DNA from: Epithemia pelagica
Taxonomy: Eukaryota > Protista > Bacillariophyta
NCBI GenBank assembly: GCA_946965045.2
Contig: OX337240.1
Location: forward strand, 1,364,001-1,428,000
Direction of reading: 5' to 3'
Length of the DNA: 64,000 bases
A program made the position numbers and the translations under genes. The notes beneath the pieces are model-generated. The model was not told the DNA's origin and did no database searches. It worked only from the letters and a program-made list of their open reading frames with translations. Positions 7,760 to 35,777 of the stretch are shown piece after piece (positions within the stretch are counted from its first letter, which is position 1; every line of letters starts with the position of its first letter).

Positions 7760-8577
7760 TTAACGCCATACGTAAGGAACGGGTTTTAAGGGTAACGGAG
7801 TAGAAAATAAACTACTCCCATAAAAAATATGGGATCAGTGCTTTGACTCCCATAAACTACTCCCATCTTAACACGGTTTGAAAACTCCCAGTTTTAATTT
7901 CGAGTACAAATTTATTCATAGTGAGAATTTTTTGTCATTTTAGTCGCTTTTCTCGAACTTGAGCGGCCATCCGCGATGACCATGAGAGACAATGAGGGCG
8001 GACAATGAAAATGGCATGGATCATCTTCCAATGATGCCAAACCAGGTCAGAATGGATGAAGGAAAGTCAATTGATCAAGACAGATGGTATGTGGAGGCGA
8101 AAGTTGACCAAGGAAAGGTTCAATGTGTCGAAAAAGGGTCAATGCTGTGAAGCAGGCAAAAACATGGTCTGAGAGAGGGAATTGCCGAATGCTCAACAGA
8201 GGTGCTGTCAAATCACAAATAAAGACAAAGTCCTATAGTTCATATTATTTTACACCAGAATGGAAGGTCTTGACATTTGCTGTTGGATATTGAGTGTGTG
8301 CGTACTGCTCAAAGTTGGGCCATGGTCGATGGGATGAGAAAATCACAAAAATCATCCGAGTTTTGATACACGAAACGACTGTTATAATTTCAAAATCAGT
8401 GTAGACTATGATATATGAAAATGTTCAAAATTCCACAAACTATTAGAATTACAAGTGAAAAAGACAATGACGTCTATATTCCAATTAGTAGATGTCGTCA
8501 AAGTTATGGGAGGAGTGTATATACTGCTCGAATTTATGGGATCAGTATATATACTGCTCCCTTACGTATGGCGTTAA
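7760..8577. mobile_element. Non-autonomous DNA transposon (piggyBac-like MITE), copy 1
   Basis: TTAA at 7760-7763 and 8574-8577 flank an 810-bp body with 14-bp perfect TIRs CGCCATACGTAAGG. Subterminal CTCCCATAA/TTATGGGA repeats. Near-identical copy at 41717-42534. Confidence 0.9.
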
Positions 8578-9060
8578 GAATTCGTTAGGCAGTCACATAG
8601 GGCAATACTAGCGTCCGCTCATAAACGAATCACTCGCGCATGCAGATTCGCGCAATCCGATATCCGATATCCGACATCCGACGGCGCAGCCACTGACTGT
8701 CGTTCCCCATTCCCCACCGTCACCGTAGGTAGTCGCCAAAGAAGAGAAACAGCCCTCAGCACGAATATTGTTGTTGGAGCGCAACCCCTGTCCGACGAAA
8801 AGTCAATCCATTTCATTTTCTTGTTTCTGGAATAGACGAAACCAGTTCCATTACAACAATCGTGTCCATTGCTAACAGCATTTCCATCAAAGTCGTGGAT
8901 CCACAATCAATATCTAACTGAAAACCATTTCATTGGCCATATTCCGTCATTGAGGAAGTCAACTCGCCACACCGACGAAACAGAAAAACGAACATCATTC
9001 AAATCCACAGGCTGGGTCAGAGCATTTCATATTACTTTGTTCAATCCAAAATTTAAAGAC

Positions 9061-9810
9061 ATGGCAGATGTCCGAATGTGTAGTTCACCAGAACGGTAAG
9101 GCAGGGATCAAGATTCCGAGTGTCTCTCGATTAACCGGTACATCCTGACATACTTTTCCTCTACCTCTTTTTCCAGAAGAACAACTGAGACTGATGATGG
9201 AAATTCTTTCAACCAAGACACCCATCTACTCTCTACACCAGCTCACAGCAAAAGCCAGTCAGGAAAGCTGACTCCCAATCATTCCTTGGTCGGTTCCTCG
9301 AAATTAGTTCGTAAGTTTTTGTCAACCACTGATAGACACCGCTTATTGAAATCTGGTGCCAAACGCCATGAGTCTCCATACACAACACCCATAAAGATGC
9401 CTGGATCATCTGGAGTTTCACCGAACCAATTCCTTTTTGAATCAACGTCGATGCAGCAGACACAAATTAGACGAAACGTAACAGATGAAGAGGAGGAAGA
9501 AGCAACCATTGGAGCCAGTGGGTCGCAATCAACTGCTGCTTCGACGCCTGGCAGTTTAGAAGAGGAAAACACAGTTAGCCCGCCTTTGATGCGCTACGTA
9601 CAGGGGCGTGAAGATTGCATAAACCCTGTTAGTCGTATTCTATGGGAGAAAACAGTGGAGGAAGAGAATATTCCCGTTGATGCGGAGGATGCCTCCTTTT
9701 CGTGTTTTCGGGTCGTGTCCCCTCTCTCTCTTGATGTTTCCAAACCAACAGCTTCTTCCTCAACATTGCTGGCACGACCAATGGCTGTCCGACCAATGCT
9801 TTTGGCATGA
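9061..9810 (+). CDS. Hypothetical low-complexity protein (about 222 aa)
   Basis: ATG 9061, exon to 9095, GTAAG donor, pyrimidine-rich CAG acceptor at 9176. Exon 9177-9810 joins in frame with ORF 9286-9810. No domain recognised. Confidence 0.55.
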
Positions 9811-10592
9811 GCAATTGTCTTCGCAGTGCTGCCAAACCTACCACAACTATGATTTGCATGTGCCCTCCACTGGGAATCATTTGCTCGCTACATAATCATA
9901 AGGGGGCATTGGTTAAGGATGGCCATGTATCTGCCTTGCGTCTCTGGGTATCTCCTGATGCTTTAAAACTTGATTGTTAATTTCTTCTTTCAAATACTAT
10001 TTGAAAGTTTCTTCTTCTGTTGTAAGGAGCGGACAGCTACTGTTATAGCAGTTTTCGGTAAGGCATGGGACATCTTCTCAGCCTTACGTCTCGCTTTATG
10101 AATTGCTTGCCGATGCATCTTTTCCAATTTACGCCCAGTTTACGCCATGGTCCATGGTGTAAAAGCGTCGGTCAAGGGTCAGGTCGCACGCGAGCTACAC
10201 GTTAACTATGAACAAAACAGTACCTGAGCTAACACGAACGGGAACGGGAACGCCTCTCATCAAACACGACAAACTGGCGACTGGTTTCGACACCAGAAAC
10301 AGAACTTGTGGAAAAAGTCAACGGTACTTTCGTTTCTGCAACTGCGTTCCATTGCCGCATCAAAGCCTTGTTGTCTGCCCTAGGAGCCTGGCCCATTACC
10401 TTCAGCTTTTGCCGCGAAGTGTTTGATCTTTAGAATAGGAGTAAGTGTGATTGATTTCGATCGTCGAGGGGAGAAAGGAAGCTTCATATCGAGAAGTCCG
10501 GAATCGGAATCAGCACACAAGATGGGCATCTTAAGTCGTGCTCCGTTGTCTCACCACCAATGCTCATTTCTTGGTGCTACAGAGCTTTGAAC

Positions 10593-29238: not shown

Positions 29239-30696
29239 CTACGATGGCAATTCTCTATCGTGTTCCGGATCACCCGGTTCTGGTCGAGCAACTTGAACAG
29301 CAACACTCATGTAGTTCACAATTTGATCATTCACGTCTCGAACTGCTGCAATGAACAAGCGATTCCAAAAAGGTGTACCGTCGGCCTTGTAGTTGATCAA
29401 TGTCACACCCACATCATCTCCGGCCGCCAGGGCATGGCGAATCTGATCAACCTTATCCGGGTCGGTGGCAGTACCTTGCAAGAAACGACAATTTCGGCCA
29501 ATCACCTGCTCACGCGAGTACCCAGTCAAGGTCAAAAAGTCTGGCGATACAAACACAATCGGGTTGTCTTCGAAACTAGGATCGGTGATGACAAAGGCGG
29601 TTTGTGATTTTTGAATGTTGCTCACCAAATCGAAATCTTCAGCAGCCAACTCGTTCTTGTCTGTGCCGCAAGCTTCCCACACATTTTCGGGAACCTTGTC
29701 AATCGCGTCACATTGGTCAAGAAGCGGCGTGGAGTCCTTCTCATCGATATTGTTTCGCACCATGGCTTTTAGTTCAGCATTCGCTCTTTGTAGTTCAAGC
29801 AACTCTTCTTGAAGGTCGCTCATGTGGTTCTTTTTCCGATCACGCGTCTTTTTGGCCAAGACGCGATTTCGTTCTCGACGCCGTTCCGCTTGTTCCTGAG
29901 TCATGCTGGTTTGCCGTCGGCGATTTTTGGCACGAGCCGCAAACGCTGCTTCAATGAACTGTGCACGGTCTAACATGGGCATACCAGCAGCCATTGCGTG
30001 AAACGGATTGGGGAGGATTGCAACTTGTTGTTGCTGTTGTTGTTGTTGTTGTTGCTGCTGCTGCTGTGTTTGTTGTGGCTGCGCCATACCTTCAGTGTTC
30101 ATCATGGGAGCGGGTGTAGCGTAGATAAATCCCTGCTGTTGAGGATCATCAAGAAGCATTGAATTGGAGGGGACCGCTCCTGGAACAGCGGAAGCCATGG
30201 CCATAAACGATGCTGGCCACGCAGCAGCAGCAGCAGCAGCAGTATTTGCAGCAGTGGCTGGTTGCGCCACAGCTGGAGTCAGCTCCGGTGGTGCCTCGCC
30301 CATTAAACCTTGCTGCGGCTGCGAACTTTCGATGTTTGGAGAGACCACTGGTGGAGGCATATCTTCGGCTTCCAGGGGTTCGCCTTCTCCAGACAGCTCC
30401 GGAGAGGTCTCGCCCACTGTATCTCTCAAGAACCGGTTTTCATCATCCGCACTGAATCTAACGACCGGGCATCCATGTGAGACTTTCCAACACACCAAAC
30501 ATAAAGTGCACTAAGAGACAAAGAACTTGTCTTACCCCAATCCGCTGTCATCTCCAAGGGTTCCCACATTGGCTCCTCCAGCTTCGAAGAACGCTTCGGC
30601 CAGAACATCGACATCGACATCGTCATCCACGTTTCCGGGCCAGAGCTCCCCTGGTGGTGGCCCACCGCTGTCAAGCGCAAGAAGAGGGTCATCCAT
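29239..30696 (-). CDS. AUREO: Aureochrome (bZIP + LOV blue-light transcription factor), most like class 2
   Basis: Exons 30696-30536 and 30451-29239. bZIP RRERNRVLAKKTRDRKK. LOV FVITDP..DNPIVF..GRNCRFLQG..NYKADGTPFWN. Poly-Q tract. Class assignment is from memory of the family. Confidence 0.93.
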
Positions 30697-32272
30697 GAAC
30701 GACATGGTCCTAAGAAGTACACAGCAATGAATCAGTAGCTCAATTCACAAAAACAAGAGGCTGTTAGAGGTTTGTCCCAACAAGGGTGGATCCCAGATCC
30801 CAGATGGCAAGCAGACAGTCTTTTGCGAGATTTGTACGGTGGATTCTACGTTCAAGCACAATCGCTCTGCATTTGTAAAGAGAAAAGATGTCGGTTGCTT
30901 TATGTTGTAACATTGTGTCGGATGATGTATGGGTACGATGTCGTTTTGTATCGGTGAAAGTGTAGTGTCCGCTGGAACGTTCGGTTGATGCCAGTTTCTG
31001 CTCATGTCTTACCCCATCATGATGCTACACAACGATCGATAGTCAATGTCGTACCTCGAAGCAAGTCATCTGTGATCCAGAAACCCTCCAGTACCGGAAA
31101 GAAACGAAAAGAGAAGTTGAATGCTGCTTTGCTTCCAAAGAACAGTTACATCATCATCCTTTCATCCAACCACAACTTTGCATTCTGAAGCCCGAGATAT
31201 TCGGAATTCGTGAGACGAGATCTACCATCGACCATGGAATATGGTGAACGAGAACACGATATTATGTTGTGTCATCTTAACTCTTTTCTTGAAACTGAAT
31301 GGAGAAGTGTAACCTTGCTTGTGCATCGCACGATATGGGTCTGTACATAGCAAGAGCGCAAAGGATGGCAAAGGATAAACCGTAAAACCTCATGGATGCT
31401 GGCCCATCAAGTCAGTTCATGAGCGTAGGATGTTTCTTTCGGGCAGACTCTATGTCAACAAACAAATCAGGTGTTGCTTTAACTACATGTCGGAAAAAGG
31501 ACATTCAGTAGTCAAAAGTTGCTTAGACAAGAATACACGTTTAGTACCAAATGACAAAACCCTAAAAAATGACATTTTTTTTCTACACATTAAGGTTTCT
31601 AAAAATTCAATCGTTGTTGTCGGCCATTCTCGACCGATTCGTGAGCACCATGGGTCAGGTAAGGCCTCTAAACTCCCAACAATAGTGTTCTTAGAAAGTC
31701 TGTAGCTCCATGTTTGAGTTGGTTGTGGTTGTGGCATCCAAAAAAGAGCCAGAGCAGAAGGCAAATTTTGGTGAGATTCGTGTCATTTTGTGTCATCGAC
31801 ATCTTCTGCCATACCACTCACCATTTCCGTACTTACTTGTGTTGAATCGTAACCCTGGGATTGTTGGTGAATCACAGTGTACTTACTCGGACCTTCTTGA
31901 ACAGATCTTGTTGGTATGGCAAGCATGTTTGACTGCGGCAGTCGGCAGCCGCATCGTTCCATTTCGTGGAACGGATGCGGTCACCACCATCATGTAGTAT
32001 CCATGCCCACCACTTGTCTACCAAGGCCAAACACCGTCCTGATAAGAAGCAGCGTCCAAACAGAGGCAATGACAATAACAACAACGACAACATGTCTATG
32101 ACCAGAATATCCAGCATGACTCAACAGGAAACCAACAGTGCCATTCAAGAGGGTTTTAAAGCCAAACAGGTCCATCTCAAAGCTCGAAACAGAAACAACA
32201 ACCAAACAGGTCCATCTCAAAGCTCGAAACAGAAACAACAAAAAGAAGAACAAAGAGAATTGGCAGTATCGA

Positions 32273-32907
32273 ATGCACTTTATCGACCAAACTCGAATAC
32301 GAGTTGCTGGAGGGACCGGGGGGAGAGGATGTTTGTCCCATCAAGTGGCTCGAAAGAGACGAATGCATCCCGATGGTGGACATGGTGGTTCCGGTGGCTC
32401 GGTGATATTGGTAGCTGACAGTAAATTGTCGTCCTTGCGCATGAGAATCAAACACTATACCGCACCCACTGGAAACGCTGGCACATCCAAAAAGCAAAGA
32501 GGAAGATGTGGTCGAAAGCTCTTGTCCGAGTTCCCTGTGGTGTGATGGTGAAACGAGTGCTTAAAATGGATGAGGAATGGGACGAGACAACCAAGCAAGT
32601 GGCGGGTTACACACCCGAGATTGATATGGGATATCTTACCAAGGGTGGATCCACCTTTATGTCGGATGATGAAGAAGCAGCAGCGGCGGCGGCCGTACGA
32701 GCGGAACAACAAAAACAACAACAACAACAACAACAAGAGGATGATGCAGAATTTAACAAGGATCTCAATGTGTATTCTGAAAAAGATCTCGAGGCCATTA
32801 GTTCAATGTGCTGCAGTGGTAGAGGATGCCAGTCATTGTCCAGTGGCTCTTTGTCGGGCTCTGATGGCAAGACAACTTATCACCATTCAAAAGTCGATGT
32901 TCACTAG
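32273..32907 (+). pseudogene. obg: Obg/CgtA-family GTPase N-terminal fragment (frameshifted, no G domain)
   Basis: FIDQTRIRVAGGTGGRGC..PDGGHGGSGGSVILVAD..HYTAPTGNAG, then a frameshift near 32516 to LVRVPCG. No P-loop follows. Confidence 0.8.
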
Positions 32908-32964
32908 ATTAATTTAAACACAACCAAGTTCAAATTTGTACTAACAATTCAAATTACGCAAAGG

Positions 32965-34075
32965 CTAAACCTCTCCATTGTCGCGTCGTTCGGCCGCAGT
33001 ACCAATGTAAACGGTATCCTCTTGGAATCGGGTCAGTTTCTGGTGAATCCAGGCAAAGAACCACGACGAGTAACAGATACCTGTCCACTCGACCAGCAAA
33101 CAAAACCGAATAATCATGGTCGACAAGGGATTGGCCAGAAATACCATGGGGAAGGAACTGGCCAAGACACGCCAGCTCAAGGATGCGACAATGGTGGATA
33201 AGAAAGCCCCCAATACTCCTGTATCAAAAGGGCTTGCAATCCATCGCCGACCCCAAACAGATTCTCATTGGTCTCATCCTTGAGTTCTACGGTAATGATT
33301 CGAGCAATGACAAACATGACAACGGTTTGAAAGATTTGTCGTCCGACCAAAAAGGCTTGAAGATTGGCACTCGATTCCTTGAAAATCAAGTCACAATTGT
33401 ACTTGGCGGACGTGTGTCGTTCAATCTCTTGAGCGGGAAGATGTGCCACGGCGAAAAAGGCAATCTGCAACCCTTCCATAATACCGGTGATACCAATGAG
33501 AGTAAAGGGCACAATCACAGATACCACCGGCGGAACGCACTCCCACATGGTTGTGCTGTTTTGAAACAATGCCGTTGGGATTCTCTTGAGATTCAATCGG
33601 CTTGCCAGAGACGCGAGCAAAGAATATTTGTGAGCAAGACGCACATGAGATCCAGATACTGGCGTCCCACAATGAATCGCTCTAGATTATCTCCTTTGTT
33701 AGCCAGGGAAGTGATCTTGTGTGTCCGGGGATGAGTCTTGCGGTACACCAACTTGTTAATGGGCTTTAGACCCACCATGCAGTTCAATCCACCTTCCATC
33801 ATGGTCAGCCAAAGAATCAAACCCCAGAAAACAATATAGGCCAAAATGGGATGGACGTTTTTCTCTCTGGTTGCCGTCGTTTGTTTGGTAAAAATAGCAG
33901 CCGACACCACGACAACGCTAAATAGCGTCAGTGCCAGCAACAAGATGTGTTTCAGGGCGGTCACTGGGTGAGCTTTCCACCACTGCGTCGTCTCTTGCTT
34001 CGAGGGACGAGGATTTGTGGCCTCTTCTTCGTCACTGCCATCGTCGCTGAAGGGGCAAATTTTGATTGCCCCCAA
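32965..34075 (-). pseudogene. SIT: Silicon transporter (SIT) remnant with two internal deletions and frameshifts
   Basis: Across four frames: WLTMMEGG..VGLKP..THP..KGDNLERFIVGRQ; SGKPIESQE; TTMWECVP..EGLQIAFFAVA..LVGRQ; TGVLGAFLSTIVASLSW..FLANP..EDTVYIGTAAER. Confidence 0.88.
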
Positions 34076-34789
34076 ACAAGTTTTTTTTTGGAAAAAATTT
34101 AGAACCTAAATTTTCCATGTCATTTTATGAAAATGACGCATTTTGTCATTTGGTACTAAACGTGTACCGAAAAGACCTGATGGTGGGTATCATCCCCAAA
34201 CGCCAGTGTGCGGAGCCTCTTTGAAAACTTGTCGTTTCTCCTCACAGAAGGACCATGACCTCATCTCCAGAGACACAACGACATTTCTGATCAACTTTCA
34301 CTCTGGAACTTGCCGCCAATCTGATCCAAGACGTTCCGTCTCTTTGGCCACCTTGCAAAATGCCCTGGCTCCCTCGTCATAGCCTTGTTGGATCCTGGAA
34401 TGGTATTTCAGACCCCATTGTGAGTTCCAGCTCCACGTTTCTTCAAGCCTATACTATTGCAATGAAGCAGGTCAGTCTTTACCCTGAAATCAGCCTATGG
34501 TAGCGGGTACCGGTACCGACGCCAATGCCAATGCCATGGTCGAGGGTCACACCAGAACAAAGCGATTTGAAGTGCGGTCATAAGGACAGACGAACGGCTC
34601 ATAACCTCACTCATACGTCGCGTCTGTCGAGAGAGTCGAGAGTCGAGAAGATTCTTCGTGCTCGAGAAGGAAGGTAAAGATCGTTCCAAGAGAAGATCTG
34701 GTTTGGGAAATGGGAATCGTATCTTGCACGCCTGAGTCTATTACAGAGGTCCTCATAGATCGAGATTACTTTTCCCCTTTAAAAACAAG

Positions 34790-35410
34790 ATGAGTCCACC
34801 ACTTCCTTATTCTCAGTTGGGCACCAGTCTGTCCCAGTCATCATCTCGTCGCAAGATCCAGATTGAATGTTTTCTGGACTTGGTGTGTCCGTTCTCGTGC
34901 AAAATGTTCAACACATTGTACGAGGGCGTGTTACCGGCATTCAAAGAGGACCCAGATGTCGAATTTGTTCTCCATCAAGTCATCCAACCGTGGCACCCGC
35001 AAGGTGTCATGGTACACGAGGCAGCTCTGGCATGCAAGCGTGTTGCCCCCGAAAAGTATGCTGATTTTGTTCATGCCTTATATGCTGCTTACACCAGCGG
35101 TCAATTCAAAGATGCCTCTGCATGGGACAAGACACGTTCGCAATTGCACGACGAGTGCTTGGCCTTGTTGCCCAGCGGTGTCAATACCGAAGCTGTCAAG
35201 GCGTTACTTGTACGAAGCGATTCGGGTTCGGGGAATGAGATCACCCAAGAGCTGAAATGGGCCTGTAAGATTCATCGAACAAGAGGCGTCCACGTGACGC
35301 CAACAGTTTTTATAAATGGCCTTGAGGCTGGTGCTGTCTCGAGTGGTTGGACGAAAGAGGAATGGCTCAAATTTTTGGAAAAGAAAGGGGAGGACTTGTT
35401 TCAGGTTTAG
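34790..35410 (+). CDS. DsbA-like thioredoxin-fold protein
   Basis: 206 aa with FLDLVCPFS, QPWHPQ and cis-Pro motif VTPTVFING. Confidence 0.8.
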   Translation: MSPPLPYSQLGTSLSQSSSRRKIQIECFLDLVCPFSCKMFNTLYEGVLPAFKEDPDVEFVLHQVIQPWHPQGVMVHEAALACKRVAPEKYADFVHALYAAYTSGQFKDASAWDKTRSQLHDECLALLPSGVNTEAVKALLVRSDSGSGNEITQELKWACKIHRTRGVHVTPTVFINGLEAGAVSSGWTKEEWLKFLEKKGEDLFQV

Positions 35411-35777
35411 ATACCGACTTCACAGTACGTGACTACGGCAAATGGGAACAACTTTCCTTCTGTCCACACTTCGATGATGATGGCAAATCTCTTTTGTCAC
35501 TTTCAGAAGCGATACCCAATACCCATGCAGGAACTTAGTGACAGAAACACACGCGAAGAAGCTTTTCCTCATGAGTACACATCCTAGAGACCGATCACTA
35601 ATAATCATTAACACAAATTTCATTCACAGTGTCCAAAGGGCTCAATGTTTTATCCAGTTGATGAGTATAGCAAGGGAGTTGCCATGGCAAAAACATTGGC
35701 CAAGATACATCTTAGAATACGTTCTTTACTGTGGACCATTTTCTTTCGCTCTTGAGGCAACGTCCTGCCATCCAGTA

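Follow-up and report, generated by a model that had tools for sequence, protein, structure and literature searches.

A transposase-less Pack-type element carrying host gene fragments in the diatom Epithemia pelagica

A gene-carrying element in a diatom genome

The DNA examined here was a window of 64,000 nt from the diatom Epithemia pelagica (contig OX337240.1 of assembly GCA_946965045.2, positions 1,364,001 to 1,428,000), in which positions 31534-34166 formed an element of 2633 bp bounded by an inverted repeat. This segment is very probably a mobile, transposase-less terminal inverted repeat (TIR) element carrying captured gene fragments, namely pieces of an Obg locus and of a silicon transporter (SIT) gene; this statement includes neither the mechanism of capture nor the superfamily. 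The gene-capturing interpretation, proposed in an earlier note made from the sequence alone, was supported, and the element is a Pack-type non-autonomous TIR transposon: its end sequences were found paired at three unlinked loci around three interiors, with an intact Obg gene and a full-length SIT gene located elsewhere. The novelty lies in the host lineage, this kind of element being already known from plants.

Coordinates are those of the window unless a locus is named. L002, L003 and L005 designate element-bearing loci, L004 is a SIT gene locus and L006 an Obg gene locus.

Boundaries, termini and subterminal motifs

Each end of the element consisted of a TIR embedded in a longer core.

31534-31559, + strand: left TIR, 26 nt, 100 % complementary to the right arm; the TA at its outer end (31534-31535) would be the target duplication
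31534-31876, + strand: left core, 343 bp, made of the TIR and a subterminal part, with AATGAC/GTCATT at 31550, 31568 and 31782
34095-34166, - strand: right core, 72 bp including the right TIR, with AATGAC/GTCATT at 34119, 34132 and 34145; found in all three copies
34141-34166, - strand: right TIR, 26 nt; outer TA at 34165-34166

The perfect 26-nt TIRs with outer TA announced in the earlier note were confirmed, both by the full complementarity of the arms and by the distribution of their 24-nt core, which was encountered at only two places in the 64 kb, one in each arm (0 expected from 100 shuffles). Complementarity of the arms in the window copy ended exactly at the outer TA, position 31533 being A and position 34167 being C, while beyond the 26 nt the two element ends could still be aligned, with gaps, for ~70 nt. 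The arms were in inverted orientation and separated by 2581 nt, a spacing inside the 300-15,000 bp range of packFinder (PMC8903248).

Repeated subterminal AAATGAC motifs had also been pointed out. The heptamer was not enriched across the whole window (17 found versus 15.5 expected), but the hexamer AATGAC/GTCATT was clearly concentrated at the termini: six of its 54 sites in the window lay in the 339 nt that make up the two termini, where 0.29 were expected (Poisson P ~6e-7), and these terminal sites were kept in the sister copies. The left core was likewise present in all three copies, with 97.2 % identity to L003 and 93.3 % to L005. At ~31648-31667, it displayed a Kozak-like ATG (CACCATGG) followed by a splice-donor-like CAG/GTAAGG, both kept in all three copies. 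Judging from the sequence, this could be the first mini-exon of the gene of a putative autonomous element.

The reported absence of a transposase was borne out. None of the nine open reading frames (ORFs) of the element displayed a Pfam match to a transposase and, since all 2633 nt were assigned to cores, cargo or short filler, there is no room for a transposase inside the element.

Sister copies and copy number

The public assembly ENA ERZ21939226 led, by way of its gene calls, to L002, L003 and L005. L002 was a candidate new locus on account of its identical SIT ORF; this was rejected, as the same flanking genes surrounded the same element, with nine differences across the element plus 600 nt of flank. 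L002 is an allelic haplotig, and both haplotypes carry the window element. The two remaining loci displayed distinct copies, of which the first differed from the window copy by an exchange of its central part.

L003 copy (ctg1351l, 7892-10408): 2517 bp, same termini with one mismatch in one arm
L005 copy (ctg1261l, 7825-9962): 2138 bp, with similarity to the window copy limited to its left 343 bp (93.3 %) and right 72 bp (91.5 %)
32298-33671 of the window, unstranded: stretch swapped in L003; within it lie the remaining Obg sequence, the 176-bp filler and the greater part of the SIT remnant

The flanks of L003 were AGTAGG-rich and unrelated to those of the window copy. Inside, L003 shared window positions 31534-32297 (764 bp, 97.2 %) and 33672-34166 (495 bp, 97.0 %), and the 1374 bp lying between them in the window were replaced by 1256 bp of a dihydroxyacetone kinase gene that corresponded to positions 236-313 of Dak1 (its end) and 2-131 of Dak2 (the larger part of that domain). 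The first Obg-domain codons (FIDQ) were retained in L003, as was a SIT piece that breaks off at the position matching 33672; past this point, SIT sequence continued in the window copy and in L004 but not in L003. Because L003 keeps stumps of both Obg and SIT, the window arrangement is the older one and the Dak piece a later internal replacement. Different cargo between the same TIRs, which the earlier note had named as decisive, was thereby observed, L003 having a Dak1/Dak2 middle and L005 an unrelated interior. The closest relative of the Dak cargo, P0177 (75 % amino acid identity), was discarded as the Dak donor, since it came from a different assembly, ERZ25042306. In that assembly, which is probably from a related diatom species, L008 and L009 displayed a Dak gene whose protein shared 75 % identity with the cargo.

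Each of the three copies began and ended with TA, and the context of this dinucleotide, (G/A)-TA-C, was roughly palindromic. Their flanks were mutually unrelated and similarity between copies stopped exactly at the terminal TA. In L005, the same A-to-T change was present in both arms.

Unitigs of four public runs, three of DNA and a fourth designated X4, provided the read evidence. In the three DNA runs, unitigs spanned both flank-to-TIR junctions of the window copy and broke at 31563 and 34138, ~30 nt inside each end, as expected for a genomic repeat. Loose ends located exactly at 31534 and 34167 ran into the flanks of L003, and those at 32297 and 33672 coincided with the L003 swap junctions; the loose end after 32297 (GTGTAGC...) was also considered as an intron of the Obg parent, which was rejected, as it is the swap junction. 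At least four further sequence variants, some of them L005-like, were present across 31583-31626. In run X1, where depth was taken as summed unitig depth, the left core reached ~4.5 times the depth of the flanks. From unitig depth, the family is estimated to be low-copy, with five or six loci.

The empty site predicted for the window copy would read ...GACAAGAA-TA-CCGAAAAG..., and reconstructed empty sites had no other match in the fetched loci. The genes beside L003 and L005 had no allelic contig in the collection in which an empty site could be sought, and the large ORFs next to these two copies gave no match to a transposase. Exact-pattern scans of a metagenome collection with the TIR and with a conserved 27-mer of the left core also yielded no match.

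Several additional features were observed in and around the sister copies. L005 contained, at 8354-9199, a nested small TIR element of ~845 bp with termini CTAGTGTCTATTCTACCCGG and repeated GTCCTCATATGAGGAC motifs and, at 9620-9700, a separate palindrome of 80 nt. Outside the element, 180 bp to its left, an ORF at L005 7417-7647 displayed a hAT C-terminal dimerisation domain (Pfam E 4e-16) and is probably a decayed hAT copy adjoining the insertion. Short repeats of the TACTCC / TACTCGTAC type were abundant in the flanks of L003 (7742-7891 and 10409-10560) and L005 (9963-10000), and a CTAGCTAGAGG motif was found on both sides of the L003 element. They may belong to a repeat of the host that is common to both sites, or reflect a preference for such targets.

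Captured host gene fragments

The interior of the window copy was composed of two gene fragments and two fillers.

31880-32798, + strand: Obg-locus fragment, 919 bp, aligned by blastn to the intact Obg gene L006 4564-5416
32162-32241, + strand: perfect 40-bp tandem duplication, single-copy in L006 and element-specific, also found in L003
32273-32545, + strand: truncated Obg reading frame starting from the ATG at 32273, a 91-codon Obg-fold stub
32799-32974, unstranded: filler, 176 bp, between the Obg and SIT pieces
32975-34050, - strand: SIT remnant, 1076 bp, aligned by blastn to L004 6125-6547, 6789-6845 and 6928-7529
34051-34094, unstranded: filler, 44 bp, with a hairpin GGGGCAA / TTGCCCC at 34052-34072; found in L003 and absent from L005

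The Obg fragment started 3 nt past the left core and ran from the upstream region through the N-terminal extension into the beginning of the Obg-fold domain (positions 1-89 of 155 of Pfam GTP1_OBG), without the GTPase domain. L006, located on another contig and found via a 297-aa ORF with 88 % identity in a representative-protein search, is an intact Obg gene and includes the MMR_HSR1 GTPase part that is absent from the element. Gaps aside, identity of the fragment to L006 was 91.7 % in the upstream region and 97.4 % in the coding part. The fragment also carried a CAA repeat that was expanded relative to L006, and the absence of one base between 32521 and 32522, again relative to L006, introduced a frameshift that was present in both haplotypes. 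The 176-bp filler that follows displayed no match to L004, L006, the other element copies or the rest of the window.

The SIT remnant corresponded to nt 125-1529 of a SIT coding sequence of 1701 nt, so that the first 124 and last 172 nt were missing. It was spread over three frames, which matched positions 3-120, 243-360 and 365-441 of the 513 positions of Pfam Silic_transp. Two internal deletions (241 and 82 bp), with junctions near 33628-33631 and 33575 and microhomologies of 4-5 bp and 1 bp, were accompanied by one further frameshifting indel of 1 nt. Its three blocks were 92-96 % identical to L004, a full-length SIT of 566 aa on the same contig, 210 kb away. Between the window copy and L003, the SIT pieces displayed a ratio of nonsynonymous to synonymous rates (dN/dS) of 0.91, obtained from eight differences only; at the sequence level, captured pieces appear to decay neutrally after capture.

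Two details of the interior differed from the first description. The mosaic of broken genes on both strands was real as far as Obg (+) and SIT (-) are concerned, both being recognised by Pfam, but the "third piece" (31880-32260) does not come from another gene: by alignment to L006, this sequence belongs to the captured Obg locus, of which it covers the upstream and N-terminal portions. Similarly, the SIT remnant does not end ~5 bp from the right terminus but at 34050, leaving 45 nt to the right core and 91 nt to the TIR.

Gene calls of ENA ERZ21939226 included three Silic_transp-positive ORFs within the element in each of the two haplotigs and one in L003; these calls from SIT remnants were situated at L001 6001-7111, L002 8001-9111 and L003 8001-8435. 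Domain-based SIT gene counts for this genome would be inflated by such element remnants.

Relation to known elements and superfamily

Pack-TYPE elements, described as a group found in plants, are spread over several TIR superfamilies in rice and maize (Gisby & Catoni 2022, PMC8903248). They are delimited in packFinder by paired TIRs, a target-site duplication, non-singleton status, lack of similarity to transposases and a host-gene interior (PMC8903248); the diatom element displayed paired TIRs, a size within the range, more than one copy, no transposase and host genes in its interior. Like the plant elements (Pack-MULE, Pack-CACTA, Pack-Mariner), it is non-autonomous, a few kb long and bounded by TIRs, carries on its two strands fragments from several host genes that are not linked, displays shared termini with varied cargo, and has at least one captured piece that is transcribed, as read here from X4. 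It differs from them by its diatom (stramenopile) host, by its ~5-6 loci as judged from unitig depth, and by a sister copy, L003, in which an internal cargo replacement is preserved. Full-text literature searches found no report of Pack-type or gene-capturing TIR elements in diatoms. The sole diatom paper mentioning Pack-MULEs dealt with a Phaeodactylum MULE, which was said not to be a Pack-MULE.

That a Tc1/mariner-like transposase inserts the element at TA and duplicates this dinucleotide has about an even chance of being correct. Terminal TA in all three copies, short TIRs and a repeated motif resembling binding sites are features shared with Tc1/mariner, including Stowaway-like miniature inverted-repeat transposable elements (MITEs) and Pack-Mariner, and TA duplications were found in almost all Mariner-class Pack-TYPE elements (PMC8903248). 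The TA at the ends also belongs to the inverted repeat, and the flanks of all three copies lacked duplications of 3, 4 or 8-10 bp. Assignments to hAT, MULE, PIF/Harbinger and piggyBac were rejected, as no 8-bp, 9-10-bp, TWA or TTAA duplications were present in the flanks of any of the three copies. Its copies, of 2.1-2.6 kb, greatly exceed the size of MITE derivatives of Tc1/mariner, and classification as a MITE was rejected as well (2138-2633 bp versus less than ~800 bp, and ~5-6 loci versus high copy number). After the TA, the termini begin with CACG. CAC-type termini and duplications of 2-3 bp are typical of the CACTA/Mirage group, and TA/CACG termini with a 2-bp duplication would also fit this group.

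Proposed history and acquisition of cargo

The copies very probably constitute a low-copy, non-autonomous cut-and-paste family defined by the 343-bp left and 72-bp right cores, which would be mobilised by a transposase supplied in trans that would recognise the TIR and the AATGAC motifs, which are likely binding sites. An ancestral element would have gained the Obg and SIT pieces, and transposition would then have given rise to the window and L003 copies, now 97 % identical. The L003 lineage would later have lost 1.37 kb of its interior and been refilled with the Dak fragment, with stumps of the earlier cargo persisting on either side.

As to how cargo was collected, the architecture of the copies points, as the most likely route, to abortive gap repair following excision, with template switching (filler DNA), at roughly equal chances of being right or wrong. 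It is favoured because the internal replacement in L003 leaves both termini intact. Internal deletions containing filler DNA and produced through abortive gap repair are known from maize Ac/Ds and Mu. As in these systems, termini were kept, the internal gap was refilled from elsewhere and junctions, in the SIT remnant, displayed short microhomology; unlike in these systems, a coding gene of more than 1 kb served as filler, and template switching is deduced from architecture alone.

Another route would leave the nature of the element unchanged and is unlikely: in the two-element mechanism of Pack-CACTA in Arabidopsis, two related elements that have inserted near each other are excised aberrantly by their outer ends, and the chromosomal DNA lying between them ends up inside a hybrid element. 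Passages of PMC13317346 that refer to PMC6379663 (Catoni et al. 2019) present it as the sole Pack-type capture mechanism recorded in real time, and a first contiguous gain, such as the 919-bp Obg segment 3 nt past the left core, could be accounted for in this way. The cargo, however, consists of two unlinked gene pieces arranged tail to tail with filler, and neither the Obg (L006) nor the SIT (L004) locus displayed a tandem pair of elements. Nor does the two-element mechanism predict the internal swap of L003 with older cargo on both sides, the feature for which gap repair is preferred.

Transcription and neighbouring genes

The element was inserted between two genes.

29239-31483, - strand: aureochrome-like gene, bZIP plus PAS/LOV (Pfam PAS_9 and bZIP_2)
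34215-35600, + strand: Thioredoxin_4/DsbA-like gene, ORF 34790-35410; its X4 contig begins at 34215, ~50 nt off the right end of the element

The X4 contig of the aureochrome-like gene extended upstream to 31483, ~50 nt off the left end of the element. As the contigs of both neighbours end ~50 nt outside the element, the insertion lies within the former short divergent promoter region of two expressed genes.

X4 was read as an RNA run because it skipped a 78-nt CT..AC intron at 30458-30535 in the aureochrome-like gene, contained only 39 Mb of contigs and displayed very uneven depth. One of its unitigs, with a k-mer depth of 457 (similar to the neighbouring genes), covered 32247-32659 with no differences, whereas the parent Obg gene differed from it over the same stretch by 10 substitutions and one indel; the Obg RNA of X4 therefore originates from the element. 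X4 depth was 0 over 31618-31791, ~24 over 31792-32139 and 3.7 across the right TIR (34054-34227), and the SIT region was covered solely by contigs of a diverged paralogue. On the basis of X4, the captured Obg upstream region appears to be still a promoter, with a putative internal start near 32140-32250. An antisense or small-RNA role against the parent genes, suggested in the earlier note, found no support, X4 containing exact-match RNA for the Obg piece only and none for SIT.

The transcribed, promoter-bearing Obg stub might instead be a functional new gene or regulator whose insertion has been kept by selection. Co-option of this kind would be in line with the depth of the exact-match unitig, with the lack of any parent-type Obg contig in X4, with the fact that both haplotypes and each of the three DNA runs contain the insertion, and with the 97.4 % identity of the Obg coding part to its parent. 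It is nevertheless quite improbable: the 1-nt deletion breaks the Obg frame in both haplotypes, most of the Obg piece was lost in L003, the SIT pieces evolve neutrally, and unitig depth, which carries no strand, is a poor measure of expression.

Points for and against gene capture

Several observations weigh against a gene-capturing family as outlined here. Host-gene cargo was evident in two of the three copies only; the unrelated 1.7-kb interior of L005 displayed no gene fragment recognisable by Pfam. The donor of the Dak piece was looked for and not found, so that microhomology at the swap junctions could not be assessed. Mapping of the cargo to parent loci, as foreseen in the earlier note, succeeded for Obg with the intact gene L006, but not for SIT: dN/dS between the remnant and L004 was 0.16-0.30, which downgraded L004 as the direct donor and suggests that this nearest full-length SIT is probably a paralogue of the donor. 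The evidence for transcription came from one coded run of unstated library type and from unitigs without strand. A joint skipping the element was encountered in none of the four runs and no empty allele was seen, protein-based searches found no autonomous copy, and the family may be extinct, since its copies differ by 3-7 %.

That the TIRs are independent MITE ends, or a chance pair around a resident pseudogene cluster that never moved as a unit, is exceedingly improbable: although gene-poor intergenic stretches littered with pseudogene debris are common, the cores were paired at a spacing of 2.1-2.6 kb at three unlinked loci with similarity ending at the TA, two of these loci shared more than 1.2 kb of cargo, the chance expectation for this inverted repeat was 0, intact Obg and full-length SIT genes were located elsewhere (on another contig and 210 kb away, respectively), and independent unitigs argue against misassembly of L003 and L005. 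The objections anticipated in the earlier note, solo MITE halves and genes resident without the TIRs, fail on the same grounds.

Significance

Plant Pack-type elements are held to speed gene evolution by copying, fusing and moving gene fragments. The present element extends Pack-type behaviour to stramenopile algae: a cargo swap is preserved between its sister copies and the captured promoter is seemingly active, and the pair formed by the L003 and window copies offers a tractable case for how cargo is gathered. It is unlikely, if conceivable, that the family can still be mobilised by a TA-targeting mariner-like transposase and constitutes a working gene-fragment shuffling system in diatoms. 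If it does, promoter-bearing pieces of host genes would repeatedly be copied to new contexts and give rise to expressed truncated proteins or RNAs, as exemplified by the Obg-fold stub beside the aureochrome gene, and some of these products could act on the parent genes.

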